NCBI GenBank assembly: GCA_025558095.1
Contig: JAIVFI010000027.1
Coordinates: forward strand, 372,001-436,000
Direction: 5' to 3'
Source: Hyaloraphidium curvatum SAG 235-1
Lineage: Eukaryota; Fungi; Monoblepharomycota
DNA: 64,000 bases
The notes beneath the pieces are model-generated. The model was not told the DNA's origin. It worked only from the letters and a program-made list of their open reading frames with translations, and did no database searches. Numbering within the stretch: the first letter of the stretch is position 1; every line of letters starts with the position of its first letter. This document shows, piece by piece, positions 21,076-38,217 of this stretch. The translations under genes and the position numbers were made by a program.

Positions 21076-21259
21076 TTGCAGCCCACCAATCTGCAAACCC
21101 ATCATCAGTGATTCCGCATCATACCTATACCCAGTTATTGTAGTAGTGAGACCCAATGCACTGATTCGATTGACTGCATGGCGAGACCTTTCTTGTGCTG
21201 CCTCACATCGCTCGAGGGCTTGAACTTCATGCCCGGCACCCAAAGCTACACGGCCCAGA

Positions 21260-22047
21260 GTTTCCAATCTGGTCTGCAGCTTCTGGCATCGCTCTGCATT
21301 TGCTGAACAGTAAAACTGAGAATGTTGTTCGTCTCATGTGCTCAGGGTTATGTTTTGCAGGTCCTTGGTGCCTGCCTGTCTCCACCTCCAGATCGTGAGT
21401 AGAGCAGAGCAGCTTCTGGACGTCCCTCCGGTGCTTCTCCACCCGGATCAGGGACGGTGCAATGTGACCAAAGGTCATGTCACACATCCTCCAGAAGTGC
21501 AGCTTATCGTTGTCCTTGAGCTTCTGGGCATTGATCTCCCTGAACTTGCCCTTCACAAGATTCTCCACAGTCTCCTTGGCCCATGAAAAAGTGTCCTTCT
21601 CCCACATCTCCCTCCCCTCATCTCCACCATAGAACACAAGTAGTTCCCTCAGGAAGGCAGCCCAGTTCCAGCACCCCTTCAGTGCCTCGATCTTGAGCTC
21701 CTTGTAGAGCAGGTACAATGCAGGGTCAGCTGTTTTGATGCGCATGAGGAACTTGAGAGCCGACTCATGGTCATGAACTGCAAGAGGGTACTGGCCAGTG
21801 ATCGCGTACAGACAAGCCAGGGAGGTAGACTTGGGCTGATGAGTGACAGCACGAAGGGCCATGCATGTCACTTTGTCCCTGGTGCTTTCCCCGGCAAGGT
21901 ACTCCTCCTTGCTTTGGCATCTCCACAATGAACGGGTTCCCATATTGGCCCACTGCCTTGACCTTCGTGTTGTAGAGCTTGAGCTGGAGGTCAGGACCCA
22001 TCCCAGGCTGCTCCCTGATGTTGCGGAGCCAGAGCCCATAAGCAGCG
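21260..22047 (-). mobile_element. Defective non-LTR retrotransposon (LINE) fragment, 3' part of ORF2
   Basis: Near-identical to 37415-38007 (inverted) and similar to 27540-28345; HDLEVETGRH and DEQHFLFHC-type C-terminal region. Confidence 0.85.
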
Positions 22048-22637
22048 TCTTAAAAAGAAGGAATCACAGTTGTTCGCGCGGACATGGTTGATGTATGCCC
22101 GAGCGTGTTGAGCTTGAACCATGCCGCCGTCGATGTCCTCCCCCGAAACGGCGTTGGCCATCACGGTCGGCATCACAGCGGCCTCCCCGCCGCTATGTAG
22201 TTAGTAGTCGAAGCCGTCGCCGTAGGTTGCTGCCTCGCCGGGCTCGTGGTCGTAGCCGACATAGCTGAGATCGGCTCCCTCACTGTCACCATGCATCGAG
22301 CCGTATCCCAGGAAGCCGAAGGCTGTCAGGCAAGGCTGCGATGAAGATCGATCTGGGTGCGGGGCGGGTGAGTTGCCTTCGGCAGCGGCGTCGCCTTACC
22401 GAGATGAACAGAGAGGATACGAATCGAATCAAAATGAGATAGCGGGATAAGGAACGGAAAATCAAGTCAGTATCAGTCGCGGATGTTGTGAGATCCGAGG
22501 GGAGGTTTTCCGGGTTGAGGTGCGGTCAACCCGGGAAAACATATATATAGCGACTCCCGTCCCAACCTCCGTCACGCGGCACACAGTCACGCGCCAGGCC
22601 CGCGGCCCCTCCTGGTGCGAGGCAAACGCTGACGTCG

Positions 22638-22962
22638 AGCACCACGGCCCCTTCGCAACGCCGGGCCCACGGCCCATACTCTAGCGCCGGGCCCACGGCC
22701 CCTTCGCGGCGCCGGGCCCGCGGCCCACATTCCACTCGCGGGGCCCGCGGCCCCTTCACGGCGCTGGGCACCGCGGCCCTCTTCTTTAAGCGTCTGGCAC
22801 CTCGGCCCCTCGCGATGCGGGGCACCGCGGCCCTTCCCCTAGCCGCCGGGCACCGCGGCCCCTTCAGGGCACCGCGGCCCTTCGCGACGCTGGGCACCGC
22901 GGCCCTTATCAACGAAGCGCCGGGCACCGCGGCCCCTTCGCGGCGCGGGCACCTCGGCCCAG
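22638..22962. repeat. Array of ~13 GC-rich units with core GGGC(A)CC(G/A/T)CGGCCC and variable 5-16 nt spacers
   Basis: Direct reading, e.g. gggcaccgcggcccCTTCGCGACGCT, gggcaccgcggcccTTATCAACGAAGCGCC, gggcaccgcggcccTTCCCCTAGCCGCC. Confidence 0.9.
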
Positions 22963-24237
22963 GATCCCCCCCCGATTCTCACCCCCGCTGTGTTCCATCT
23001 GGGCATCTGCCAGCATGGCGTACGGCTGCTGGGGCAGTGACGGGCACTCGCGCTGTACGTGCCCCTTGCCATTGCAATTGTGGCACTTCTTGTCGGGGCA
23101 CGCCGATGCCACGTGCCCCGGCTTGCCGCATTCGTGGCAGGTGATCTCACTGGTCACCGGAGCCGGCCTCCAAACGGCAGCACCAGCCGGGCGGTAGCTT
23201 GGGCCGCCCATCGGCCTCAGTGTCTGCACGGGGTAGTAGCCGCGGCCTCCGCGCATGCCGCCACGTGCCAACCCGCGGCCGCGCATCCGAGTATCATGGC
23301 CCTGGCCTTGGATAGGAGCCATGCCGCTCGGTCTGTAGCTGGGGTACGGAGCGTAGCGACCGTGCTCGTACCAGGGGCGCTGCGGAGGCCGACTGAGGAT
23401 GCCACCACCACGGAGGGCTTGTTGGGGCGGCTGATAGGCAGTGAAGCCGGGTCCGAATCCAGCAGGGGGCAGGAGCGTCGGGAGTGTCGCCGGAGCTGTC
23501 ATCTTGACAGGTGCATGCGACATCTTGTTTCCTTGGGCTGTGTTAGCCGCATCCCGCATGCCATTGAACGAGAATGTTATACTCTCGCTCTTGCCGTCGT
23601 CGTTGAAGTGCCCGTCGTCGTCAATGACTCGGCCCCAGAATCCTTGGAGTTCTGCGAACGGGAAGCCTTCGGTGAACGTCACCATCAAAGCCACGTCGTA
23701 GTCTGAGAGTGGTTTCTTGTGCGCAAGTCTCTCTGACTTGATACTCAGCAGCTCATTGAAGTTTTGGTCCACAGTCTTTGAAGCGTCCCACTGCCACTTG
23801 TTTATGCGGACTTGGGACGCGTGTACCAAGCGCGCCTTTCCAACTTTGAACTTCTTGTGAATCGCGATCCAGAGGTCGTAGGCCGTCTTGGGCTCGTCGA
23901 ACGCTTCCTGGAGGACGTCGTCGAGCATCAACATGAGCTCGCCGTAGGCCTTTTCGGCCGTCGTCCTGAACTTGTGTTCCGTGAGGATCGAGTGCGCGGC
24001 CTTCTCTTCCTCGGCAAGGATGGTCTGCCTCTGCCGGTCTGTGGTCTCTGGAGCGGCGCTGCGCTCAGCAGCCCTCTTGCGGGCCTGCTCGAGCTGCCAG
24101 TCGATGCTGAGGACGTTGTTGACGACGTACTCGTACACCCCGAGCTTGTTGAGGTAGATGGGGGCCTTGCGGTCCCACTGGACCATGTTTTCACCGGTGT
24201 TGAGCAGGATAGGCTTGTCGGCATCGTTGGCTGTCAT
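22909..24237 (-). CDS. Copia-type Gag with two CCHC zinc knuckles and no pol (truncated LTR element)
   Basis: KAYGELMLML...KTAYDLWIAIHKKF (Copia gag pattern), RGG-rich region, CHECGKPGHVASAC and CHNCNGKGHVQREC. Confidence 0.85.
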   Translation of the reverse strand: MTANDADKPILLNTGENMVQWDRKAPIYLNKLGVYEYVVNNVLSIDWQLEQARKRAAERSAAPETTDRQRQTILAEEEKAAHSILTEHKFRTTAEKAYGELMLMLDDVLQEAFDEPKTAYDLWIAIHKKFKVGKARLVHASQVRINKWQWDASKTVDQNFNELLSIKSERLAHKKPLSDYDVALMVTFTEGFPFAELQGFWGRVIDDDGHFNDDGKSESITFSFNGMRDAANTAQGNKMSHAPVKMTAPATLPTLLPPAGFGPGFTAYQPPQQALRGGGILSRPPQRPWYEHGRYAPYPSYRPSGMAPIQGQGHDTRMRGRGLARGGMRGGRGYYPVQTLRPMGGPSYRPAGAAVWRPAPVTSEITCHECGKPGHVASACPDKKCHNCNGKGHVQRECPSLPQQPYAMLADAQMEHSGGENRGGILGRGARAAKGPRCPALR

Positions 24238-24302
24238 CCTGTCGCGGGCGGGCTTCCAGGGGTAGCAGGCACGTGTCAGAGCAGTTGAGACTCTTAATCC
24301 TT

Positions 24303-24542
24303 TGTTCCCCTGGTCGCAGGCGCCCAGAGACAGGTGCAGATGAGGCAGGTGGCGTTCCTGGTGTTTGTTGTGTTATTCCCCTCTCCCTAGAGCCGCCCTC
24401 CTAGGTTATTGTCTAGCCAAGATCCACCCATCCATCCAAGTCCAACATCCAACTCCAGGACCAACTCCAACTCGATCCGACGGCTCCAAACACATCCATC
24501 CATCCCCAGCAACACTTGTTCCCCGACTTCCAGGCGCTAACA
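24303..24542 (-). mobile_element. Probable 5' LTR of the gag-only element
   Basis: 240-bp segment bounded by TGTT...AACA, followed on the minus strand by a weakly PBS-like aaggattaagagtc and the gag ATG; no second copy in the window. Confidence 0.45.
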
Positions 24543-25254
24543 ATCAGGCTGACGGCTCAGCCTGGAGATATCTGGAGCTCCTGGAGAGCGAACTGCGACG
24601 TGGCGTGCGCGTGGTGAGGGTTTTGGCCTTGGGATGGAGGGGAGCCACCCTGGAACCCGCCGTGGGGTATCACACGACAAAGCTTGGGGGAGGACGCTGG
24701 GGCAACCCAGGGGTTGGACCACCAAGCCGTTGCCGGTGCCATGGACGGATAAAGGCGCCGTGGATGTCTCGCAGACAAGCGGGCGCCGAGAAAGATCCCG
24801 CGCCGCGCAGGTGCATGCAGGTGCAGGGCTTTGGTGCGGTGTGTCACCGTTCCTGAACAATGTGCCTTTGTGCCAGGCATGGGCTTGCCGAGGCGACGCT
24901 GCAGGTTAGCACGCGGATGCTTGCAGAGGTCGGCGGATCGGAAATCGTCACTCGATCATCCGCAGATTGGCCTCACGTCCCAGCATACTGTTGTCAGTGA
25001 ACCTGCGAAGCCAAAGATGGGCAAAGATAATGAACATTGGATCTTTCTTTTCTTTGCCCTCCCATGATTCGTTCCTGGGATTCTGCCCTGCCAACCTCGC
25101 TGGGAACAAGTACTCTGTCCATGACTACGATGAAGGTACAGTATGTTGCAAGCGGCTGCATATTTGTGCTCTGCCCTTGCACTGACATCATGAAGCATGT
25201 ACCAGCATCGCATTTGCTAGGTATCGCGTGAGGCATTTGACCTGAAGCACAAGA

Positions 25255-25461
25255 TGTAGAAGTTCGAGCCCATGATCAAAGTGAGGCGGCAGAAGGAGAA
25301 GGCCCTAAACTCCATTGCCAGCTTCATCTCAAAGTCCATGAAGGACAGAAAACGGGGAAATGAAAAAGATGCACGACGACAAACTGCAAACTAGCAGCAA
25401 ACTGATGGCGTAACAGCGGCCAAGCCAGGGGCAGGTCCGGGTCACCAATACTGTTCTATTC
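25255..25461 (+). mobile_element. 5'-truncated LINE 3' end with TATTC-type tail
   Basis: Matches 25875-26082 and the reverse complement of 27280-27490; ends ggtcaccaatactgttctattct. Confidence 0.85.
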
Positions 25462-25464
25462 TGT

Positions 25465-27240
25465 TCAGGTCACAGAAATGGCAAAAGGCACTGTGCAGCA
25501 AGAAGCTTGCTTCTTGCCCCATGCACTCATTTTTATACAGGCCATGCAGGTTGTGGTGGTCAGAGTACACAATCGTCCTGTGCTTTTCTCCTTCCAGGTA
25601 TAGTGTCTCCATTCTGCAAATCCTTCCTTGATTGCAAGCATCTCCTGGTCAAGCATGTCGTATATAGACCCCTTCGGTTTTGACATTGCCCTTGAGAAGT
25701 AGCACACCGGGTGCAGCTGTTCATCCTCCCTTTGTTGCAACAGAATTCACTGATCGCAAAAGCAGAACTGTCCGTCTCCATCACGAACTGCTCGTTAAAG
25801 TCAGGGTGGAGCAACACTGGTGGTGTGAATGCGCGTTTCAAGTCATGGAGACCTGGCTCTGGGCTCTCAGCATCAAGGAGTTTGAGCCCACGATCAAAGT
25901 GAGGCGGCAAAAGGAGAAGGCCCTCAACTCCATTGCCAGCTTCATCTCAAAGTCCATGAAGGACAGAAAACAGGGAAAATGAAAAAAGATGCACGACGAC
26001 AAACTTCAAATTAGCAGCAAACTGATGGTGTAACAGCGGCCAAGCCAGGGGCAGGTCCGGGTCACCAATACTATTCTATTCTAATGCACGTTTCAAGTCC
26101 TCACAACGCCTTCCTGCATTCCTTTGTCCACTCCCAAGCTTGCTCTTTCTTCAACAACTTGTAGAGGGGCATTGCTTTCCTTCAAACCCTTCCACATATC
26201 TTCGCAGGTAGCTGGCAAAAAAGCCAAGAAACGTCCTCAGTTCCTTTGCATTCCTGGGTTCTGCCCAATCCAGGATGGCTTGACTTCTTTCGGATGTGGC
26301 TGGTACCCTTTCTCCGTGATCAGGAAACCTGCGTAGATGACTTCCGTTGGATCCCAGACGCACTTGTGTGGCCTGACCTGCAAGTTGTTGTCCTTCAACA
26401 CCTGGTGCACCTGCTTCACGTGCTCTGCGTGCTTGTTTGGGTCCTTGTCGTAAAGTAGCAACGTAGAGCTCAAGGGAAGCAAGCTTCCCCCGCTGGTCCC
26501 TTTTGACAACTAGATGGGCGCAATGTGTCGGATCAATGGAGGGAAAAGTAAACTGATTATATATATGCATAGAGCATCGCAGCACAATTTACAAGTCCTC
26601 AAACGCCTTCCTGCATTCCTTTATTTGTTTACTGCAAGTCATCCAAGTAGATCACCAACCAATCGCCGTGTATTGATAGATTGAGTTGCGTTTGGGATAG
26701 ATCTTGCAACTGCATTATTCAGGTCAAGCAACTGAAAAACAACGTCAAGCAGGTAGACTGGATAGATCATGCAGCTGGAGGTGACATCGTGCAAATGCAC
26801 TTGCAAGATCTCACCCACTGACTTGCTTGATCTATACTTTGCAAAGTTGACCTCACCTTATAAAACCAAATCTCGCCATGTTATTGGCAAAATGTCGCCC
26901 CAATTACACGATATCACCGCTTGAAGAACATGATCAATACGGCATGCATCAATCGTCCGGGAACTCGATGAAAATCGTTTTCATGTAGCACTGAAAAGCA
27001 CTGGGTGCGTTCCTGAGCCGAAATGGCATCACCAAGTACTCGTAAATTTCGTGCCAAGTTTTGAATGCAGTTTTCCAGTTGTGGCCTTCAGGCTGCTGCA
27101 AGATTGTGAATTTTGGTGAAGATCTTTGCTCCTGCAACTCTGTCCAACAGTCCGTCAGCAACGGCAAGCTGTAGTTGTCAGGAACCATGATTGCACTGAG
27201 GCCTTGATAGTTTATCACAGGCCTGGGACCGACCCCTGCC
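25465..27240 (-). pseudogene. Decayed Ty3/Gypsy pol (RT-RNaseH), interrupted by insertions
   Basis: KTAFKTWHEIYEYLVMPFRLRNAPSAFQ; HAEHVKQVHQVLKDNNL; PRNAKELRTFLGF; PVLLHPDFNEQFVMETDSSAFAI; PVCYFSR...QEMLAIKEGFAEWRHY; many frameshifts. Confidence 0.88.
25845..26082 (+). mobile_element. 5'-truncated LINE insertion with 17-bp target-site duplication
   Basis: TSD aatgcGcgtttcaagtc (25828-25844) and aatgcAcgtttcaagtc (26083-26099); tail aatactattctattct. Confidence 0.9.
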
Positions 27241-27279
27241 CTTGCTTTCTGCGTAGAAAAAGGGAGCTCCAGCAGGACT

Positions 27280-28971
27280 GAATAGAATAGTATTGGTGAC
27301 CCGGACCTGCCCCTGGCTTGGCCGCTGTTACACCATGAGTTTGCTGCTAATTGCAAAGTTCATCGTCGTCGTGTGTCTTTTTCATTTTCCCAGTTTTCCT
27401 GTCCTTCATGGACTTTGAGATGAAGCTGGCAATGGAGTTGAGGGCCTTCTCCTTCTGCCGCCTCGCTTTGATCGTGGGCTCGAACTCCTTGATGCTAAGA
27501 GCCCAGAGCCAGGTCTCCATGTTCCACTCGCGGCCTAGTGCTTCCAATCTAGTCTGCAGCTTCTGGCGACGCTCCGCATTTGCTGAACAGTGAAACAGAA
27601 AGTGTTGTTCGTCTCCAATGTGCTCAGGGTCATGCTTGCACGTTCTCTGCTGCACCTCAAGTCCTTGGTGCCTGCCTGTCTCCACCTCCAGGTCGTGGGT
27701 AGAGCACAGCAACTTTTGGACATCCCTCCGGTGCTTCTCCACCCGGATCAGGGATGGTCTGATGTGGCCAAAGGTCATGTCACACATCCTCCAAAAGTGC
27801 AGTTTGTCGTTGTCCTTGAGCCTCTGGGCATTGACCTCCTGAACTTGCCCTTCACAAGATTCTCCACAGTCTCCTTGGGCCATGAGAAAGTGTCCTTCTC
27901 CCACATCTCCTTCCCATCTTCGCCGCCATAGTATACAAGTAGTTCCCTCAGGAAGGCAGCCCAGTTCCAGGACCCCTTCAGTGCCTCGATCTTGAGCTCT
28001 TTGTAAAGTAGGTACAGCGCAGGATCCGCTGTTTTGATGCGCATGAGGAACTTGAGTGCCGACTCGTGGTCATGAACTGCAAGGGGGTACTGGCCAGTGA
28101 TCGCATACAGACAGGCCAGGGAGGTAGACTTGGGCAGATGAGTGACGGCACGAAGAGCCATGCATGTCACTTTGTCCCTGGTGATTTCCCCGGCAAGGTA
28201 CTCCTCCTTGCTTTGGCATCTCCACAATGAACGGGTTCCCATATTGGCCCACTGCCTTGACCTTCGTGTTGTAGAGCTTGAGCTGGAGGTCAGGACCCAT
28301 CCCAGGCTGCTCCCTGATGTTGCGGAGCCAGAGCCCATAAGCAGCGTTCATCTTGGCCTCCCTGCCATGCACATGGTCCTTGCTCCGCCCAGTTGACGTG
28401 AGCTGGTACCCCAGAAGCTTGAAACTGTCGACCCTCTTTAGCTCCTGGCCCCTCTCCTGATCCTCTTCCTCCTCAGACACCATGCCCAGATCCATCCCTT
28501 TTGCACCATTGGCCTCCATGAAAGCAGTGATGTCGTTGATGAATAAGATGAAGAACAGCGACGAGAGAGGGTCCCCCTGCTTCACTCCGGTCAGGAACTT
28601 GATGAAGTCCGACTTGGTCCCATCTTCATCCCGGAGCCGTCCCCACACGCGCCCAAACGCCATCTCGAACATGTCAACAGCCTGTTTGGGCACTCCCATC
28701 TCCTCTAGCTTCTGCCATAACCTGGGGCGCTCCACCGTGTCAAAAGCCTTTGTGAAGTCTACAAACACCATGATCAGCTTCTCCTTGCGTGGTACTCCTC
28801 CTTCGGCATCTCACCAATGAACGGGTTCCCATATTGGCCCACTGCCTTGACCTTTGTGTTGTAGAGCTTGAGCTGGAGGTCAGGACTCATCCCAGGCTGC
28901 TCCCTGATGTCACGGAGCCAGAGCCCATAAGCAGCGTTCATCTTGGCCTCTCTGCCATGCACATGGTCCTT
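27280..28971 (-). mobile_element. Defective LINE ORF2 (RT) copy plus an adjacent short divergent fragment (28789-28971)
   Basis: FVDFTKAFDTVER, GVKQGDPLSSLFFILFIND, FKLLG; catalytic YADD region absent; TATTC tail at the left end. Confidence 0.9.
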
Positions 28972-29013
28972 GACCAATACTATTCTAACGATGCACGCCT
29001 CCTGGGAACCTGC

Positions 29014-29237
29014 TGTTGGAGTGGCTATGGGGCGTGGGGAAGACGTAGCCCCAGTGGTCTGAACCGGGTCAGAACTCAGATGGACGGGATGGGGAGAGGG
29101 ACAGTTTCACGTTGACCCGTTGTCCATTCCCTTGTGATGACAAGTCCCTAGATGACCCCTCCGATCGTACCCAAGTATCCCCACACGCCAATAGACTCCC
29201 TATTGATACAGAATCGTAGCAACGATCCATTCCAACA
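29014..29237 (-). repeat. Copia 3' LTR (224 bp)
   Basis: tgttggagtgg...ccattccaaca; identical by eye to 36328-36551; PPT adjacent. Confidence 0.97.
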
Positions 29238-29285
29238 CTCCCCCTCGTTGCAAGATTCCCAAGAAGTGTCCAGAAATCCCCAAAG

Positions 29286-32200
29286 CTAGTCACGAATCTC
29301 TACAATTCCCATAAGTGCCCTGAAACGTTGAAACTTCTCCCTTGGTAGCTGTTTGGTGAGCAGATCCGCAAGCTGGTCCTCTGTGTTGATGTACTCCAGC
29401 TGTATCTCTCCACTATCAATTTTCTCCCTCACAAAATGGTACTGCACTCCAATGTGCTTGGTACGTTCATGAAAGACAGGATTCTGCGCCAGCTTGATAG
29501 CCCCCTCATTGTCCTCCTTGATGACTGTTGGCCCTTGCTGAGGAAATCCCAATTCCTCCAATAAACTCCTTAGCCACGCAACTTGACGTCCAGCATAAGA
29601 TAGAGCCATGTACTCGGCCTCTGTTGTTGAAAGAGCCACCACTGGTTGCAGTTGCGACTTGTAGATGATAAGACCGTTCCCCATCATCACTACAACCCCA
29701 GTTGTTGACTTCCCAGTGTCAAGATCCCCAGCAAAACTGGCGTCTGCATATCCATGCAATGCTTTGGTCATGTCCAGATTCGGATCCCTCTTGTAAACCA
29801 AGCCAAAGTCAGCTGTTCCCTTCAAGTATCTGGTTGTCTTCTTGACTTGCTCCACTGCTTCACGAGTAGGTGCCATCCCATGACGGCTCTCCGTGATAAT
29901 AGGTAAGGCAATGTCCGGCCTGGTGAAGTTCATGGCATACATCCAGCTTCCCACCATTGATCTGAACGGAAAACGTCCGATTTCCTGCTCCTCAGCAGCA
30001 GACAACTCCGTCTTCCGTTTCCTGAGCTTCACCCCAACGTCCACAGGTACAGAAACTGCGTTGCAAGTGTCCATTCCGAAATCCTCCAAAGCCTTATTGA
30101 TGTATTTGGACTGCTTGATTGTGATTGTTCCAGCCTTCTCGTCCTGCTTGATTTCCAAAGCCAGGAACTTTTTCATGCGACCCATGTAACGTATCTTAAT
30201 CTGCTTTCCCAGCTCCTCAAGAAATGCAATCGTCCGTTTTTCGTCCGTTGAGCTACATCCAAAGTCGTCCACATGAATAATCATCAAAAGAAACCAATCA
30301 TCTTGCCGCAGAAAGTAGATGCAGTACTCCTTTGAGCAACGTATAAGCCCCATCTCCGTGAGTATCTCGTGCAGGTGTCTGTGCCAAGCACGTGCAGCTT
30401 GCACAAGTCCATAAACCGCGACTCCAGGTCGAATTACAGTAGGTCTTCCATCAGTAAACTCAGGTAAATCCATCCCTTGAGCTGGATACAAGTAAACTTC
30501 CTCGTTCTCCTGGAGCTTAGCCTGTAGGAATGCCGCGTTTGCATCTGCCTGATGTACAATCATGTTGTTCTGAGCAGAAAGCCAAAAGAAAAGCCGTACA
30601 GCAGCAGCAGAAGGTACAGGTGCAAAGGATTGACCAAAAGAAGATGGATCCTGCCAATCACCCCTTGCCACCCATCGAGCCTTGTAGTTTTCCTCCCCCA
30701 CAATGCTGCCATCAGCTCCAGGTTTGAGGTCAAATACAAATTGGCTTCCAACCGCGAATTTTTCCTTGCCCTCAGGCAAGCCCATGATGTTGTACGCATC
30801 TCTGCTCTTGAAGTTGCCAATCTCACGTTCCATTGCCTTGGCCCACATCTCACGATCCTCTGAACGCATTGCCTCTGCATAGTTCCGTGGTACACGTGCT
30901 CCAGTGCTTGCAGCAAAGATTCCATCCATGTGTGCCATGTCCTCCCAAGTCGGTAGGTGTCCCTGCCAGTCCAGGTGGTCCTGGACCTCCTCCATCAGGA
31001 AATTGATCGATTCCAGCGTGATCACGTTGATCTCCTTCTCGTTGCTCGTGTTGGGGGCTTTCCACCACTCCCCAGGAGGTCTTGGAGCTCTGCTGGATGA
31101 CCTTGTAGGTAAAGGTATCTTAGAGCCCGTTCCAGCCGCCCCAGCGCCTCCCTGAGCTCCGCTGCTTGATGAAGATGCTCCTCCAGGCTCCCCACGTTGG
31201 TCTGTGGCTTCCCTAGCCGCACGATCACCAGAAAGTTGCGATCCACCAACTGCCTTTCCTCCCCCTGGATCGCCACTTCCACTGTTCCCAGAGCCTCTTC
31301 CACGAGTCACCAGCTCGTCCTCACTTTCGCTCTGAGCTCGTTGATCGCGTGACAGACGTAAATCCGTTCCCTGGCTGCCAGAACTTGAAGATTGATGTTG
31401 AGTACCTCCAACTTCCAGTCTTTGACCTCCTCCCCCGGCCTCCTGGCGCTCAGGTTGACGCTGCACACGGTCTCCCTGTGTCCCACGATGCTCCTGGTTG
31501 CCGTCGTCGATTGGATCTGCGGAACGGACCCGCCGTGGCGTCTCCGATGACGCCTCCAATTCCTCAGGCTGCGCCGACTCCTCCACGGCAAGTCGACGGT
31601 TCAATACAGCGCTCGGGTCCGCGTCCTCAGGTAGTTTTTCGACCAAAACTCTGCTTTCCAGAACCCGCATGTAGCTCTTGAGCGTCTTGTTTGACCAGCG
31701 TTCCTCGAAAACGACATCACGTGAGTCAAAAATCCGCCCGGTCTCAAGATTCTGGACCGTAAATGCCTTCGATCGCGAGCTCATTCCCAGGTAGCGGCAT
31801 TGTACCGCCTTAGCATCCCATTTGCCGCGCTTATCCTTGTCGACGATCGCGTAACACGTTTCTCCGAAACGTCGGATGTGGCTAATGTTCGCCCGTCTCC
31901 CAGTCAGCAGTTGAAACGGCGTAGACCCTTTCTGCCACGTCTTTGTATTCGGCAAACGATTGCGCGTATTGATATGATGCTTCAATGCGTATCCCCAAAG
32001 CGGCTTCGGCGATTTCGAGTCGATCAGGATGGTCCGGGTCCCTTCCTCAGCCGTCCGGTTCCGCCGCTCAATGACTCCGTTCTGCGCAGGCCGATTCGTT
32101 ACCGACGATTCCAACTTGATTCCCTCGTTCTTGCAGTACGCTTCGAGCCGTTTTGACGAGAATTCACCTCCGGGATCGACCCGCATGCATCCGACCTTTA

Positions 32201-32399
32201 GGCTGAACTGGTTCTTCACCCACTCGGCAAAGTGCATCATCCAGTCCTCCGCCTCCGATTTGTGCTTCAATAGGAACGCAAACTCCGCAGAAGTGTACTC
32301 GTCGACTGCATGCAATGCCCAGCGTTCTCCATGCACCGTTGCAACGTCCGATTGTGTCAGGTCCCAGTGAGTCAGCTCAAAAAGCGCGAAGGGAGCACG
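29286..32399 (-). CDS. Copia pol 3' part: integrase core, reverse transcriptase, RNase H
   Basis: ELTHWDL, RVDPGGEF, QNGVIERRNRT, YKARWVARG, DANAAFLQ, YGLVQAARAW, IHVDD, GYADASFAGD, STTEAEYMAL, RTKHI; no internal stops. Confidence 0.95.
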   Translation of the reverse strand, partial: RAPFALFELTHWDLTQSDVATVHGERWALHAVDEYTSAEFAFLLKHKSEAEDWMMHFAEWVKNQFSLKVGCMRVDPGGEFSSKRLEAYCKNEGIKLESSVTNRPAQNGVIERRNRTAEEGTRTILIDSKSPKPLWGYALKHHINTRNRLPNTKTWQKGSTPFQLLTGRRANISHIRRFGETCYAIVDKDKRGKWDAKAVQCRYLGMSSRSKAFTVQNLETGRIFDSRDVVFEERWSNKTLKSYMRVLESRVLVEKLPEDADPSAVLNRRLAVEESAQPEELEASSETPRRVRSADPIDDGNQEHRGTQGDRVQRQPERQEAGGGGQRLEVGGTQHQSSSSGSQGTDLRLSRDQRAQSESEDELVTRGRGSGNSGSGDPGGGKAVGGSQLSGDRAAREATDQRGEPGGASSSSSGAQGGAGAAGTGSKIPLPTRSSSRAPRPPGEWWKAPNTSNEKEINVITLESINFLMEEVQDHLDWQGHLPTWEDMAHMDGIFAASTGARVPRNYAEAMRSEDREMWAKAMEREIGNFKSRDAYNIMGLPEGKEKFAVGSQFVFDLKPGADGSIVGEENYKARWVARGDWQDPSSFGQSFAPVPSAAAVRLFFWLSAQNNMIVHQADANAAFLQAKLQENEEVYLYPAQGMDLPEFTDGRPTVIRPGVAVYGLVQAARAWHRHLHEILTEMGLIRCSKEYCIYFLRQDDWFLLMIIHVDDFGCSSTDEKRTIAFLEELGKQIKIRYMGRMKKFLALEIKQDEKAGTITIKQSKYINKALEDFGMDTCNAVSVPVDVGVKLRKRKTELSAAEEQEIGRFPFRSMVGSWMYAMNFTRPDIALPIITESRHGMAPTREAVEQVKKTTRYLKGTADFGLVYKRDPNLDMTKALHGYADASFAGDLDTGKSTTGVVVMMGNGLIIYKSQLQPVVALSTTEAEYMALSYAGRQVAWLRSLLEELGFPQQGPTVIKEDNEGAIKLAQNPVFHERTKHIGVQYHFVREKIDSGEIQLEYINTEDQLADLLTKQLPREKFQRFRALMGIVEIRD

Positions 32400-33258
32400 A
32401 CCCGTACTCCTTCCTCACTTATTAGGCTCTCAGAATATAGGAAGCCCTGAGTGCTACGGGTCGGAATACAAAGCAGCCTTCCAGAATCAGACGAGGAGGA
32501 TCAGGATGTATTCTTGGTGTTTCTCCTCTTAGTTCTATAGACTATCGTAATGCTCCATAGATTATCTTATAACCTCCTTAAATCTATGGCTCATTACTCC
32601 AGTCTAAACGCAAACCAACGTCTTATTATAGTACTGTTTAGCTTAATTTATTTCTATCTTATCTATTAGGTCTCTCTTTTTAGTACTGGGTAGTAGGTTG
32701 GTTATGTCAATAGAAGATTTGGTAACTCGTAATAGTTCAAGTAGAGAGAGGTTGTATAGTGGACAGGAGGTCTCTCTAAAGATCAGATGGAGGAAACTAG
32801 GGTTACTCTCAGGATTAGTCATGATACTAAAGCCCTACTTATGCTTTATGCGACTAGGAGACATAAAGCTCTACTCACTCGTAACTAGAGTAAGCAGGGC
32901 TTTAGTGTAGTTGCAGCCTCATAACTCATGAGTAGAGCTTTATAGCTACATTAAACTCCTATTCAATACGAGCTTTTGAGGCATCCCCTGCCTCACCTCT
33001 CACTACTTGTAGGGGTTTATGTGTCAGGTAGTATCAAACCTAAGTAGAACTTCAACAATAATTAATTGATGGTAGCTTTTATTAGCCTACTACTGCTTGT
33101 CGTAGTACTTCTGGTAGCCAGCCTCTACGAGTAATAGTGAGAGTAGGTACTCAATAGAAACATTTGAGAGAGGATTGTGCGTAGCCAGGGAGCTTAATCT
33201 CTTAGGGCTAAGTAAAAGGGGATACTAGCTTAAGCTCAGAGAGTAGAGCTTTACTTGG

Positions 33259-33522
33259 TTAGTAAATTTGAATAGATCCTCGAATTCGGTGAAAGGCTAC
33301 CAGTAGCGAGAGAGCTACGGCGCTTTCAGCTCCAGCGAGAACGAGAAGATAGAGACTAAAGTGGGCTCCCATCAAGTCATCGAACAGAAAACCAAAGTAA
33401 ACTAAGCGGAAAGCAGCTACAAATACCATAATCTCAATGGCTAGAAGCATCAGGATCAGTTGTCGAGAGGAGAAAACGAATCCCAGCATAGCCACAATAA
33501 AGAGAGCCAGTAGGGTGATCAT
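33259..33522 (-). pseudogene. nad4L: Mitochondrial nad4L copy (intact ORF) within the NUMT
   Basis: LILMLLAIEIM...FDDLMG...LVLAGAESAVALSLLVAFHRIRGSI. Confidence 0.93.
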
Positions 33523-33788
33523 CGATGAGTCATACTTAGATTAAAGTTCTATTGAGGCTCTAAGCTAGCTAGATCATAAACCTCTAAAGTCCTACTTATG
33601 CTTTAGTGCAGTTACAGTCTCATAACTCCCTGAGAGTAACCCTAGTTTCCTCTGAGTTTAACCTATTAGGGTTAGGAACAGGGGGACTAGCTTAAGCTCA
33701 GAGAGTAGAGCTTTACTCATTTATTGCTAACTAAGTAGGAGATTGATGTAGCTCTAGCTAGCTTAAACTCAGAGAGTAGAGCTTTAAA

Positions 33789-34183
33789 TTACAAGAAGTC
33801 TTTGATGGTAATCATGCAGATGAAGGTATAGATGTAGGCTTGCAGATAAGCGATTAGTACTTCCAAGACGAGGAAAACAGTGAGGAGTACCATAGGAAGG
33901 ATGAGGATCAGAATGTTGGTTCCTCCCTCAAAGGCTTCCCACAGAAATCCACCGATTACTTTTACTAGAGTGTGTCCAGTAATCATGTTGACACTAATAC
34001 GGATACCAAGGGCAATAATACGAGTAACGTAAGCCAGCATTTCTACCACAACGAGCATAGGAATGAGGGGCAGGGGAGTTCCAGATGGAATGAAGAGTCC
34101 CATCATGGCGTATCCGTAGCGACGGAATCCATTGGCAATGGCAGTGACCAGAAGGAATACAGCCAGGTTAAAGGTAATGATGC
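33789..34183 (-). pseudogene. atp6: Mitochondrial atp6, 3' half only, within the NUMT
   Basis: FIPSGTPLPLIPMLVVVEMLAYVTRIIALGIRISVNMITGHTL...LEVLIAYLQAYIYT; 5' half missing. Confidence 0.93.
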
Positions 34184-34306
34184 TTATTTTGTGTTGGTTA
34201 GTTGGTTATTATGAGGGGGTGTTGGTGTTGTTGTTTTATGTGTATGCGTTATAGTAGGGCTGCAGGTTTTGGCTGAAAGATCTAGTGCTAGTAATATAAA
34301 GGGTAT

Positions 34307-34359
34307 TGAGGCGGGTAGGAATCGAACCTACTTTAGTACAGGACCTCAGAGTTACAGTC
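34307..34359 (-). tRNA. trnY: 3' portion of mitochondrial tRNA-Tyr(GTA), truncated at the anticodon stem
   Basis: gaCTGTAACtctga anticodon loop, long variable region, T-arm gtagg-TTCGATT-cctac, acceptor 3' strand ccgcctc-A. Confidence 0.8.
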
Positions 34360-36153
34360 ACGCTCCGACTCCGGATAGGGCAACTGATGCATCTTGCCCA
34401 TCACGCACTCCTTACAGAAGTTGTTGAGGTTTCCAGCAAACACGTACTCCTCCAATCCATCCACAATCCCAGCCTGTTGAACCTTCCTGAGTGCCGCGAT
34501 CGGGTAGTGCCCGCAGCGCCCATGCGCAATCTCCGCGCTCAAATCCCCTTCCTGAGCACTCAGCATGATCTGTTCGTCATGCTCGTTGAGGATTTCCGCG
34601 TTGAGATAGTAAACGTGACGATCTATGCGGCAAGTGCCCCGCACGTCGCCGCCCTTGGTGATGGCCCCTCCATCCGGACCCAGAAGCGTGTAGTATCCCA
34701 TCTGCCCTAGTCTCCCAATCGAAATGAGCGTTGCAGGAAGATCTTTGATGAAAAGCACATCTTCCAGGGTGACGATGTCGCCAGAATTGGTGAGCTTGAT
34801 CTTGAGCTTTCCGACTTCGATCGCACGCGCGATCCCTTTTCCCATTCGAACATCAACTGCATCGCACGGCTTGATGCCGTAGAGCAGTTCCCTGATTCCC
34901 GTCGCGTGCACGGACGCGCCGCTATCCCCCATCAGCCTGCCGCGCATCTCCTGGCCCGTCTTCGCCGCGTGCACGACGTGTTCCGGGGTTTTTTCGTATC
35001 CACCGTCCCCCGTCGTCTCCCCATCGTTTCCCTCGATTCCGCCCTCCATCATGAACAGGAACGCGCCGAATCGATCTTCCAGATCGGGGAGATCGCCCAG
35101 GGTGAGCGTGTTCTGCTGCTCTCGTGCCGTTTTCCCATCGTCCTTCCTCCAGCACACGGCCTCGAGATGACCGTCCTTTCCGCACTTGTTGCAGGTTTTG
35201 TCACGATGGGTGCAGTCCTTCTTGACGTGTCCACCCTTCCCGCAGCAGAGGCACGTGATTCCCGAGCCGTTTTCGCCCTCCGCCGTGGCCTGCCGACCCC
35301 CGCGATTTCCGAATCCTCGCCCGCGACCCCTTGAACCCCCGCGGTCACCTCCATGGCCACCCCGTGATCCTCCGCGACCCCTGCCACGGTTTAGAGCGTA
35401 CATCAACGTGTTTGGAGCGGGATTCACGGTTATGTTGGCTGCCCCAGGTGAGTACGTATCACCATTTTGCTCAGCTCGCTTGATCATAGTCTCCTCTTCC
35501 ATCTCCATCCTCTTCTGAAGGTATGCAACGTTCAAGATAGGGTGTTTCTTCACTCCATTTTCAGTCTTCCACTCGTGTTTGGTCTGTGCTCCCAGCCAAA
35601 TGCCGTCAATCTCGGCCCGGACTTGATCAAACTCAGGTAGGTCCTTCAGGACTTTCCTCCAGATGCTCATATCATCGTCATCTCCCTTCAGCTTTCCCAG
35701 TGCTTCAACTTCCATCTTTTTCTGCATGAAGCGGGTAAAATTCGGAGCCACCCGGTCGGTTTTGATGAACTCAAAGCTGTAGTACTGGACCTCGGCGTTC
35801 CCTTGCTGCGCCACATTTTCCGTCACGAAACGCTCCTCTAGGTAGTCCCAGATGTCCTTAGCAGTGTCCATCCTGCTGCAGATCCTTTTGAGACCAATAG
35901 AGAGTGATCCTACCAGGATCCCTTGAGCTTTCTGGTCCTTCGTGTTCCAGGCTGACAAATCATCTTCCGTCTTTCCTCCCTGCCCTACCACGGGCTTTGC
36001 CACCTTTCCAGTCACAATTTGCCAGTCACTCTCCCTCTGGAGCTTGGCCTTGATGTCAATTAACCAATCCTGGTAATTGGTTTGTGATCCGGTTTCCTCG
36101 AGCTTGGCCCCCCCAAACAATGCCACACGGGTTCCTCCGACCGAAATCTCCAT
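34360..36153 (-). CDS. Copia gag-protease-integrase zinc-binding part
   Basis: NYQDW, TAKDIWDYLEERF, two CCHC knuckles, DSGASVH protease, HGRCGH...CKEC (HHCC). Confidence 0.95.
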
Positions 36154-36327
36154 CCCGGCCGCCGCAGCACCTCTAGTGCTTCACGCGCTCTTTCTAGCGC
36201 CCACTGAGTCCACCCAGGCGGTCCTGGAGACCAGACTCAGCTGGATGCGGTCCCCTCGGCTGGTTGCGCCACACGCAACTTCAAAGCCGCGCAAAAGTGT
36301 TCTGGACACCCTTTGGGCTCATAGACC

Positions 36328-36551
36328 TGTTGGAGTGGCTATGGGGCGTGGGGAAGACGTAGCCCCAGTGGTCTGAACCGGGTCAGAACTCAGATGGACG
36401 GGATGGGGAGAGGGACAGTTTCACGTTGACCCGTTGTCCATTCCCTTGTGATGACAAGTCCCTAGATGACCCCTCCGATCGTACCCAAGTATCCCCACAC
36501 GCCAATAGACTCCCTATTGATACAGAATCGTAGCAACGATCCATTCCAACA
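36328..36551 (-). repeat. Copia 5' LTR (224 bp)
   Basis: Identical to 29014-29237; followed on the minus strand by PBS-like ggtctatgagccc. Confidence 0.97.
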
Positions 36552-38049
36552 CCTGCTGCGCCCCATCACCCTCAAGGAGCTCGAGAAGGTCCTGAAGAAG
36601 GCTCCTAACGGCAGGGCAGCGGATGAGGATGGGATCAGGCTCGAGTCCGTCAAGTACGGGACCACTGTGCTGAAGCAAGCTGTTGTCGATCTGCTCAATG
36701 ACGTGCTCAATGGGGTCGACATGCAAGACTGGGGCCAGACACTCCTGGTGATGCTGCACAAGAAGGGGCCCAAGAACGTGGCTGGCAACTACCGGGGCAT
36801 CAGCATAGAGAGGACACTGGAGAAGGTCTTCTCCCTGGTCTGGAACGCTCGGCTAGCTCCCTGGGCTGAGTGCAACAAGTTGCTGGAAGGCTCGCAGTTT
36901 GGATTCCGGGCACGGAGGTCCACCCTTCATGCAGTGTTCCTTGCTGTGGCGCTCTTCTCCTTGGCCAAGGCACGCAAGGAGAAGCTGATCATGGTGTTTG
37001 TAGATTTCACAAAGGCTTTTGACACGGTGGAGCGCCCGAGGTTGTGGAGGAAGCTGGAGGAGATGGGTGTACCCAAACAGGTTGTTGATATGTTCCAGAT
37101 GGCGTTTGGGCGGGTGTGGGGAAGGCTCCGAGATGAGGACGGCACCAAGTCGGACTTCATCAAGTTCCTAACTGGAGTGAAGCAGGGGGACCCCCTCTCA
37201 TCGCTGTTCTTCATCTTGTTCATCAACGACATCACTGCTTTCATGGAGGCCAATGGTGCAAAAGGGATGGATCTGGGCATGGTGTCTGAGGAGGAAGAGG
37301 ATCAGGAGAGGGGCCAGGAGCTAAAGAGGGTCGACAGTTTCAAGCTTCTGGGGTACCAGCTCACGTCAACTGGGCGGAGCAAGGACCATGTGCATGGCAG
37401 GGAGGCCAAGATGAACGCTGCTTATGGGCTCTGGCTCCGCAACATCAGGGAGCAGCCTGGGATGGGTCCTGACCTCCAGCTCAAGCTCTACAACACGAAG
37501 GTCAAGGCAGTGGGGCAATATGGGAACCCGTTCATTGTGGAGATGCCAAAGCAAGGAGGAGTACCTTGCCGGGGAAAGCACCAGGGACAAAGTGACATGC
37601 ATGGCCCTTCGTGCTGTCACTCATCAGCCCAAGTCTACCTCCCTGGCTTGTCTGTACGCGATCACTGGCCAGTACCCTCTTGCAGTTCATGACCATGAGT
37701 CGGCTCTCAAGTTCCTCATGCGCATCAAAACAGCTGACCCTGCATTGTACCTGCTCTACAAGGAGCTCAAGATCGAGGCACTGAAGGGGTGCTGGAACTG
37801 GGCTGCCTTCCTGAGGGAACTACTTGTGTTCTATGGTGGAGATGAGGGGAGGGAGATGTGGGAGAAGGACACTTTTTCATGGGCCAAGGAGACTGTGGAG
37901 AATCTTGTGAAGGGCAAGTTCAGGGAGATCAATGCCCAGAAGCTCAAGAACAATGATAAGCTGCACTTCTGGAGGATGTGTGACATGACCTTTGGTCACA
38001 TTGCACCGTCACTCAAGCCGCCCGGGGCAGGTCTGGGTGATACTATTCT
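36552..38049 (+). mobile_element. Defective LINE ORF2 (RT) copy; probable target of the Copia insertion
   Basis: PITLKEL, NYRGISI, QFGFRARRST, FVDFTKAFDTV, GVKQGDPLS; YADD deleted; ends ggggcaggtctgggtgatactattct. Confidence 0.92.
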
Positions 38050-38217
38050 TTCACGTTTTTTGCATCATTCCGGAAACCTCTCTGGGTCACTCTGGAAACA
38101 CCCTCCACATGCAACTGATGGCACTTGCATTTTCTCCACAGAAAGAAGCGAGTACAACAGTACAACCAGCATGGTATCATCGGTATACGATTGCAGTCCC
38201 TTTCACGTACAATGCCA

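Follow-up and report, generated by a model that had tools for sequence, protein, structure and literature searches.

A young Copia retrotransposon of Hyaloraphidium curvatum with a multi-fragment mitochondrial insert in its integrase region

The window analysed here, a stretch of 64,000 nucleotides (positions 372,001 to 436,000 of contig JAIVFI010000027.1, or C27) from the early-diverging, chytrid-like fungus Hyaloraphidium curvatum SAG 235-1, contains at 29014-36551, as assembled on a nuclear contig, a young and structurally complete 7.5-kb Copia retrotransposon with a nuclear mitochondrial insert (NUMT) in its integrase region. As judged from sequence comparison, the insert derives from the mitochondrial DNA (mtDNA) of the organism itself and is a complex, multi-fragment NUMT, in which two pieces that are contiguous in the mtDNA (Xl and Xr) are split by a piece carrying atp6 and nad4L. 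The insert is a mosaic found at a single locus, and 16 bp of the element have been lost in its place. The Copia element had probably been integrated recently into a LINE copy, and a later break within it was then patched by end joining with mtDNA fragments; both the repair pathway and the later date of the break are what we infer.

The element lies on the minus strand. The reading frame at 34336-36153 contains gag (Retrotran_gag_2), Pol_BBD and gag_pre-integrase (gag_pre-integrs) domains, and that at 29286-32396 the rve, SH3 (SH3_retrovirus) and RVT_2 domains, all identified with Pfam. The direct LTRs with TG..CA ends, the 5-bp target site duplication (TSD), the gag-PR-IN-RT order with the integrase ahead of a Copia-type reverse transcriptase, and the RVT_2, rve and gag_pre-integrase domains are those of Ty1/Copia (Pseudoviridae), whereas the present copy is unlike that family in being interrupted within its integrase, past the zinc finger but ahead of the catalytic core. 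The features of the element and its insert are as follows (coordinates in the window, strand, description, basis).

29009-29013, unstranded: left copy of the TSD CCTGC (single CCTGC at the empty site of the LINE paralogues)
29014-29237, minus: 3' LTR, 224 bp, TG..CA ends, 100% identical to 36328-36551
29238-29252, minus: putative polypurine tract, a purine run adjoining the 3' LTR, ..GAGGGGGAG on the element strand (by eye)
29286-32381, minus: downstream pol with the integrase core, SH3-like domain and RVT_2 (Pfam, translation, sister copies)
32382-32382, unstranded: orphan A of the left outer junction, where Copia has C and the mitochondrial source T
32383-32706, minus: mitochondrial piece Xl, a non-coding spacer (run contigs, older NUMT at C32)
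32706-33127, plus: mitochondrial piece S, a spacer rich in hairpins and probably in inverted orientation to the atp6/nad4L piece next to it (run contigs)
33127-34182, minus: mitochondrial piece B with nad4L (33262-33522), the 3' two thirds of atp6 (33792-34182) and repeat-rich spacers (Pfam, run contigs)
34180-34359, minus: mitochondrial piece Xr, a G/T-rich spacer and the 3' part of tRNA-Tyr(GTA) (~34309-34359) (run contigs, tRNA comparison)
34360-34360, unstranded: orphan A of the right outer junction (comparison with sisters and run contigs)
34361-36153, minus: gag, protease region and zinc-finger part of the integrase (Pfam, translation)
36310-36327, minus: putative primer-binding site adjoining the 5' LTR, where the plus strand has GGGCTCATA, resembling the anticodon arm of the initiator tRNA (tRNA-iMet) (by eye)
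36328-36551, minus: 5' LTR, 224 bp, 100% identical to 29014-29237
36552-36556, unstranded: right copy of the TSD CCTGC (empty-site LINE paralogues)

Several points of a sequence-only reading of this DNA are borne out by this anatomy, namely the identity of the LTRs, the intact CCTGC on both sides (the unoccupied site in paralogous LINE copies has it once), the position of the block, which the flanking translations place after the integrase zinc finger (..FCKEC..) and ahead of the first catalytic Asp (..THWDL..), and the retention of gag-PR, both LTRs and the LTR-adjacent sequences, of which the primer-binding site and polypurine tract are putative. The downstream pol frame (29286-32381) is open and 98.2-98.8% identical to six full-length sister copies, but the insert separates it from its start, while the upstream frame (34361-36153) enters the insert for 8 codons and meets a stop at 34333-34335.

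The outer junctions can be read against the sequence before insertion, as the search of the own genome returned at least six full-length sister copies, 98-100% identical and all without the insert. At the site the sisters have CTCAAA, the 16 bp CGGCCGCGAGACTTTC and CGCTCC, and are open across it with the native peptide ER-KVSRPF-ELTH (translated from an intact sister); the present copy has instead 1979 bp (32382-34360), and 16 bp of the integrase have therefore been lost. An uninterrupted Copia site is also found in the contigs of public sequencing runs (below, run contigs). Both outer junctions have 0 nt of microhomology and one non-templated A each. The earlier reading had delimited an mtDNA block of 1959 bp, flanked by a CACG duplication and removable in frame without base loss, and had suggested a 4-nt staggered break with fill-in. 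Its mitochondrial origin stands, but the length and the single colinear piece do not. The left CACG (32396-32399) is itself mtDNA, and both the run contigs and an independent NUMT (contig C32) show it contiguous with a mitochondrial flank, while the right one is composed of the final mitochondrial base, the orphan A and the CG of Copia; CACG was accordingly rejected both as a staggered-cut duplication and as junction microhomology, the resemblance being due to chance. It follows that the 17 nt taken for Copia codons (APFALF) are mitochondrial and the rejoined peptide ER-APFALF-ELTH is an artefact. Removal of a net 1963 nt would indeed restore the frame, but this is arithmetic only, and such a frame-restoring 'clean excision' can mislead, since any deletion of that net length has the same effect. 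Nothing of the element is duplicated, 16 bp are deleted and non-templated A's are present, so that the staggered break is unsupported. A cluster of 12 differences at 31947-32012, considered as a repair-associated tract, was also rejected, the same block being present in the sister on C35.

The insert contains nad4L at 33262-33522 (Pfam, 3.5e-10), whose exact protein is present in NCBI nr/UniRef and whose closest named relative is that of Harpochytrium sp. JEL105 (74%), and the C-terminal part of atp6 (Pfam, 9.5e-22, profile positions 89-214 of 217), beginning at about codon 108. Of tRNA-Tyr(GTA) the 3' part is present; the cut falls in the anticodon stem, on its 5' strand, and the 3' end runs into the genomic trailer with no CCA, as in the unprocessed form. 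No tRNA was found by ARAGORN or Rfam in the window alone; the tRNA-Tyr became recognisable once it had been extended by 30 letters of source sequence taken from the run contigs, and a homologous one is present in the mtDNA of a relative. All three genes lie on the element's sense strand, as had been claimed along with the junction at a tRNA anticodon stem, and both claims agree with the Pfam and tRNA-Tyr comparisons. Spacers are kept in the insert and introns are absent from it.

The source of the insert is represented by the run contigs, which are 99-100% identical to it and extend into further mitochondrial genes, with a depth of about 3x that of the multi-copy Copia contig, while the 24-kb mitochondrial contigs of relatives are only about 80% identical. 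The own genome assembly returned no mitochondrial contig, as neither a further full match to the block nor COX1 turned up in it, and the matching run contigs are therefore taken as organellar; their mtDNA is not identical to the insert.

Comparison with the run contigs resolves the insert into the four pieces listed. Xl, over 32383-32703, is directly continuous with Xr (34180-34359) in the real mtDNA, where a run contig (X1, record 2) 'skips 1476', and the older NUMT at C32 has the same arrangement of flank plus Xl. The mitochondrial flank of Xl, present in that independent NUMT, and the remainder of the tRNA-Tyr are both absent from the insert. From the run contigs Xl differs at 5 positions in 321 nt, S at none in 437 nt, B at 3 in 915 nt compared (with a patch at 33160-33223 unlike the runs), and Xr by two indels. 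Three of the four checkable differences of Xl are common to the older NUMT and would therefore be mitochondrial or strain-side changes rather than a sign of its greater age. Piece S is probably inverted relative to the atp6/nad4L piece, as suggested by an adjacency of 16-25 nt in a repeat-rich region: two reverse complements directly precede 32706/32708 in the run contigs, that of 33129-33144 in X1 (16 loose letters) and that of 33127-33151 in X4 (25 letters), and a 3.1-kb run contig diverges from the window sequence past 33127. Past 34182 the run contigs continue into upstream atp6, the ATG at 34180-34182 being common to Xr and the atp6 piece, and the inner junctions overlap by 1-3 nt. Alternative mitochondrial joints (33685 to 33224 and 33159 to 33600) are also found in the run contigs. 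Exact-pattern scans of metagenome contigs for the Xl-Xr joint and for nad4L gave no hit.

Capture of mtDNA at chromosomal double-strand breaks, giving rise to NUMTs, was reportedly obtained in the yeast experiments of Ricchetti (1999) and of Yu and Gabriel (1999). The present locus would be a natural event of this kind, in which Copia recently integrated into a LINE copy within a transposon island and a double-strand break later occurred in the integrase-coding region of the chromosomal copy. A mtDNA stretch of about 6 kb may have been shattered and its neighbouring fragments religated at random; the shattering of one stretch is suggested by the breakpoints that are shared pairwise, Xr with Xl and B with S. 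End joining would then have captured four fragments whose order and orientation were shuffled (Xr, B, inverted S, Xl), with the loss of 16 bp of the element and the addition of one non-templated A per outer joint. The net gain of 1963 nt shifts the frame, with translation ending after 8 codons of the insert, and the copy is therefore regarded as a non-autonomous, single-locus dead end.

The 16-bp target deletion, the 1-nt fillers and the inner overlaps of 1-3 nt are as in NUMTs captured by end joining, for which blunt joins, fillers of 1-3 nt and small deletions have been reported in a primate survey (PMC2567098). With the NUMTs captured at breaks this one shares the joints that are blunt or have 0-3 nt of microhomology, the single-nucleotide non-templated additions and the small target deletion; it differs from them in its target, coding sequence of an LTR retrotransposon that is very young and otherwise intact, and in its host, an early-diverging fungus with very few other NUMTs. 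Insertions of 2-4 mtDNA fragments at one break occur in stationary-phase yeast by Pol4-dependent NHEJ (PMC11372161), and mosaic organelle inserts are described in rice/Oryza (PMC12129026). In a chromothripsis-like way, these complex NUMTs/NORGs and the present insert alike unite at a single site several non-contiguous fragments whose order and orientation are mixed; the present insert differs from them in the pairing of fragments by shared breakpoints (Xr with Xl, B with S) and in containing mtDNA only. By the rule of the rice work, a target deletion of more than 10 bp belongs to a replicative route (FoSTeS/MMBIR) and not to classical NHEJ, and the 16-bp deletion, exceeding it, counts against end joining (PMC12129026).

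DNA-level routes other than the one-step ligation of shattered fragments are, taken jointly, rather unlikely. The donor may have been an already rearranged substoichiometric mitochondrial molecule captured as a single fragment; the insertions may have been two and successive, Xr and Xl coming first and the atp6/nad4L piece being placed into them later; or FoSTeS/MMBIR template switching may have passed over mtDNA fragments and then back to the original template. The exact adjacency of Xl and Xr in the mtDNA and the resumption of the element 16 bp on have a 'leave and return' character in keeping with copy-choice or nested insertion, and a target deletion of this size is assigned to FoSTeS/MMBIR under the same rule (PMC12129026). 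Structural variants of the mtDNA do exist, as seen from the alternative joints in the run contigs, but the Xl-S and B-Xr joints occur in no contig of the mitochondrial pool of the runs. A second hit in a 500-bp target is improbable given the very few NUMTs of this genome, and the microhomologies are just 0-3 nt. The divergence from the run mtDNA is greater in Xl (5 in 321) than in the core (3 in ~1350), which would suit separate events; however, the differences shared with the older NUMT place it on the mitochondrial or strain side. An RNA-level origin, proposed earlier as template switching, is improbable to a still greater degree: within a virus-like particle the Copia reverse transcriptase would have left its Copia RNA template for mitochondrial transcripts and then returned to it, and the chimeric cDNA would have been integrated (LTR-mediated retroposition). 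The sense orientation of the three genes between intact LTRs and TSD, and a non-autonomous element that could in principle be mobilised in trans, are common to this locus and to such retroposition or retroviral transduction, for which multi-switch chimeras are documented and maize Bs1 and Ty1 pseudogenes are cited as examples (PMC5131818). The identical LTRs and perfect TSD would allow the chimera to date from the same cycle as the integration, reverse transcriptases can add single non-templated A's as at both outer joints, and the mosaic haplotype blocks of the Copia family are expected under frequent template switching. Microsimilarity, however, is absent from the outer junctions, as against 86% of junctions with a median of 6 bp, and 16 bp of the element are replaced as against a large internal part in the known cases (PMC5131818). 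The tRNA-Tyr with its genomic trailer, no CCA and a cut in the middle of the anticodon stem has no marks of a processed RNA, S is seemingly antisense to the direction of mitochondrial transcription, the pieces share breakpoints pairwise like fragments of shattered DNA, and mitochondrial RNA would need access to cytoplasmic particles. Mobilisation in trans with the spread of organellar DNA through the nuclear genome, also suggested before and just as doubtful, is unsupported by the own-genome search, in which the full insert occurs at one locus only (C27:404400-406358) with no secondary copies of the chimera, and the full-length sisters lack it. The sense orientation of all gene-bearing pieces, which also suits the RNA route, has chance odds of about 1 in 2 to 1 in 4.

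An assembly or library artefact, in which the insert would be absent from the chromosome of the organism, is the least probable of these explanations and very unlikely. The contigs of X1-X3, the three runs from this organism, cover all 'parental' arrangements but bridge none of the five new junctions, and for two junction-spanning ORF products exact look-ups gave no match in public collections. The junctions are thus read from the assembly alone. However, Logan contigs drop rare variants, the low-coverage links between high-coverage repeats being removed, and their silence is therefore expected; the depths in the bin 32296-32394 are fully accounted for without a junction-bridging contig, and the silence is uninformative, not a refutation. 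Against a random chimera, the element resumes colinearly 16 bp past the point at which it breaks off, the joints resemble the products of biological end joining, and the copy carries private variants and unique flanks.

A chimera made by reverse transcriptase or mobilisable in trans would, if true, be a new RNA-level or transposon-driven route of mitochondrion-to-nucleus transfer; no new transfer mechanism is demonstrated by this locus. With end-joining capture as the probable origin, the locus is a well-resolved natural complex NUMT of an early-diverging fungus, for which the intact sisters supply the exact sequence before insertion, and its joints, readable to the base, make it a useful case in which to study the repair of breaks with organelle DNA and the disabling of a young retrotransposon copy.

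The Copia element (29014-36551, minus strand) is bounded by the one pair of long direct repeats that a repeat search returned (29013-29238 and 36327-36552, 100% identical), and it encloses a mitochondrial (mt) insert at 32382-34360, within the integrase region, with the following features:

29014-29237 and 36328-36551, minus strand: 3' LTR and 5' LTR, respectively, 224 bp each after trimming to TG..CA
36153 down to the stop at 34333-34335, minus strand: upstream ORF of 606 aa, with Copia gag, Pol beta-barrel domain and pre-integrase domain
32396 down to 29286, minus strand: downstream open frame, with integrase core, SH3-like domain and RVT_2
33262-33522, minus strand: complete nad4L, encoded in the insert

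The identical LTRs and intact target-site duplication noticed in the sequence-only reading are borne out. The LTRs show 0 differences over 224 nt and the element is therefore young, its age being bounded only loosely without a known mutation rate, while CCTGC flanks both LTR ends and is present once in the paralogous copies of the host LINE (GGGAACCTGC followed by TGCGCCCC), which makes it a true duplication. The Copia family, as compared between the window copy (29014-32381 and 34361-36551) and its sisters, shows mosaicism: blocks of variants are shared between copies, including 12 sites within 31947-32012 common to the window copy and the C35 copy only, and the blocks 30081-30096, 30528-30581 and 31367-31372, a pattern that recombination between RNAs packaged together would be expected to give in recent bursts. 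In the window at 21200-38050, and likewise on contigs C3, C5, C10, C12, C15, C20, C21, C22, C25, C32, C35 and C37, copies of Copia and of the LINE are found together with a 182-bp repeat (28791-28972 in the window; at 98-99% in at least 40 copies), which looks like a single transposon island per contig; regular arrays of the 182-bp repeat occur in places, with a spacing of ~2011 bp on C37 and 1239 bp on C36.

At least six full-length sister elements, 98.2-99.8% identical, were found in the organism's own 31.9-Mb assembly (on C3, C15, C21, C22, C32 and C35), and none of them carries the insert. Every sister, older copies at 88-94% among them, has CTCAAA, CGGCCGCGAGACTTTC and CGCTCC at the site, where the window has CTCAAA (last base 32381), 1979 foreign bases (32382-34360) and CGCTCC (from 34361); in contigs from three public runs of the organism, Copia likewise occurs in the uninterrupted form only. 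The element has thus lost 16 bp for a net gain of 1963 nt, which is a frameshift, and the proposed clean capture without base loss does not hold. The rejoined protein ER-APFALF-ELTH relied on 17-18 nt not of Copia origin, the intact sister reading PYPESERKVSRPFELTHWDL across the site, and the restoration of the frame by excision, correct for the removal of 1963 nt, is pure arithmetic, true wherever the boundaries are drawn. Nor can the CACG flanks be kept as a signature of capture. The left copy lies within 32383-32399, which is mitochondrial because the same nucleotides directly follow 27 nt more of mt flank in an older independent nuclear mitochondrial segment (NUMT) at C32:36430-36605, and are likewise preceded by mt flank in the run contigs; the right copy is composed of 34359 (the final mt base), 34360 (an orphan A) and the CG of Copia. 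Base 32382 is A, versus C in Copia and T in the mt source.

The own assembly lacks an mt contig (no second full match to the block and no COX1), and hence Logan contigs of the three runs and of an aquatic metagenome, placed on 31900-34860, were used as the mt reference. The block between the two Copia frames, at ~40-45% G+C versus ~55% around it, encodes, besides nad4L, the C-terminal two thirds of atp6 (minus strand). The closest named nad4L is that of Harpochytrium sp. JEL105 (74%), and the exact protein of the insert is present in NCBI nr/UniRef, which makes the host a chytrid- or monoblepharid-like fungus with a published mt genome. Sequence beyond 34359 in a run contig supplies the missing 5' letters that complete tRNA-Tyr(GTA). 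In the source tRNA, made up of 34309-34359 and 30 further letters of the source, the first acceptor pair is an A-C mismatch, a type that 5' tRNA editing repairs in the mitochondria of chytrids.

The outer pieces of the insert, Xl (32383-32706) and Xr (34180-34359), are one continuous mt segment split in the window by the core, since a 734-nt contig of one run (X1, record 2) joins 32383-32703 directly to 34180-34359, both its ends extending into sequence absent from Copia and the nuclear assembly. The core contigs are ~3x as deep as either that contig or the Copia contig. Piece B (33127-34182, nad4L and atp6) starts mid-gene, at about codon 108 against a relative's mtDNA, as the atp6 contig continues beyond 34182 into upstream coding sequence; the ATG at 34180-34182, common to atp6 and Xr, gives 3 nt of microhomology. 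Just before 32706/32708, where piece S (32706-33127) begins, the contigs carry the reverse complement of 33129-33144 (X1) or of 33127-33151 (metagenome), and a 3.1-kb contig departs from the window after 33127. Read most economically, the mt gene-strand order is probably, not certainly, atp6, nad4L, spacer, S and further genes, with S flipped in the window; this adjacency spans 16-25 nt within spacers rich in short repeats, both direct and inverted. Along the sense strand of the element, the insert consists of four fragments in the order Xr, B, S (probably inverted) and Xl, with source breakpoints shared pairwise, one for Xr and Xl and one for B and S. All pieces may come from one ~6-kb stretch, for a relative's mt genome encodes tRNA-Tyr on the strand of nad4L and ~2.8 kb downstream of it.

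The mt spacers at 32780-33790 are crowded with short units, repeated and palindromic, among them AGAGAGTAGAGCTTTA, which occurs in both orientations, and two 24-nt stretches that form a perfect inverted pair (32790-32813 and 33629-33652), and alternative joints through them in the run contigs (33685 to 33224; 33159 to 33600) suggest structural variants of the mtDNA. Metagenome mt contigs of a relative (24.4 kb) have the same two ends in three independent assemblies, and their gene order finishes with tRNA-Tyr at 458 bp from one of these ends, which suggests a linear mt genome in that relative.

Compared with the run mtDNA, the core shows 3 differences in ~1350 nt, Xl 5 in 321 nt, and Xr two indels within a run rich in G and T; the patch 33160-33223 diverges too far to be aligned. 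At three of the four checkable differing sites in Xl an older NUMT on C35 shares the state of the window, so that these are mt- or strain-side changes; the sequenced runs probably represent a lineage other than the exact donor. The C35 NUMT (429564-429812, versus window 32423-32701, 81% identity) ends at the equivalent of 32701, 2-5 nt from the end of Xl (32703-32706), where a recurrent mtDNA breakage point may exist beside the G/T-rich, length-variable run 34183-34250. Other NUMTs matching the block in this genome are few and short (C32:36430-36605, 149 nt at 91-94%; C19:51813-51866, 54 nt at 100%; C5:63232-63282, 51 nt at 88%) and sit in nuclear DNA of very high G+C content (60-80%); by far the largest NUMT found with this query is the 1979-bp insert.

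The insert probably arose by end-joining capture of shattered mtDNA: the chromosomal Copia copy would have been broken, and fragments of one shattered mt molecule, including the adjacent pairs Xr-Xl and B-S, would have been ligated into the break. A shattered single molecule is favoured because two exactly adjacent segments flank a third piece, which is not expected from random unrelated fragments, and the B-S pair repeats the pattern. End joining is favoured by this adjacency together with the joints, which are blunt with 1-nt additions outside and overlap by 1-3 nt inside, by the loss of 16 bp from the target and by the mixed orientation of the pieces, features that match those reported in surveys of NUMT junctions and in experiments (PMC2567098, PMC11372161, PMC12129026). 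In stationary-phase yeast, ~12% of captured insertions (nearly 4000 of ~33,000) hold 2-4 joined fragments, mostly mtDNA (PMC11372161). Other DNA-level routes, in which the donor molecule was already rearranged, the insertion took two nested steps, or replication switched templates, are rather unlikely.

Template switching by the Copia reverse transcriptase on mt RNA, to which the three sense-oriented genes and the non-templated A's would be congenial, is highly improbable: judged by the criteria of PMC5131818, it fails all the testable ones, as microsimilarity is absent at the switch points, hardly any element sequence is replaced, the tRNA is unprocessed and without CCA, one piece is probably antisense, and the chimera has no secondary copies. 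Least likely is an assembly artefact, since the element picks up again in colinear order after a gap of just 16 bp. No run contig contains any of the new joints, and by depth arithmetic the junction bin has no room for a further contig; however, Logan contigs drop low-coverage links between high-coverage repeats, so that their silence is not negative evidence, the joints being known from the assembly.

Translation from the gag start halts 8 codons inside the insert, and the integrase core, RT and RNase H are beyond in-frame reach. Both LTRs, the LTR-adjacent sequences and gag-PR are retained, as first read, and intact sisters are open across the site, so that these could in principle mobilise this copy; the suggested spread is without support, as the insert occurs once only in the own genome. 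Accordingly, of the original observation the mt DNA within a young Copia stands, while clean capture and mobilisation are unsupported. With its joints read from the assembly, the insert is a real complex NUMT that can be neatly resolved and sits within a young Copia, a phenomenon of an already known kind.
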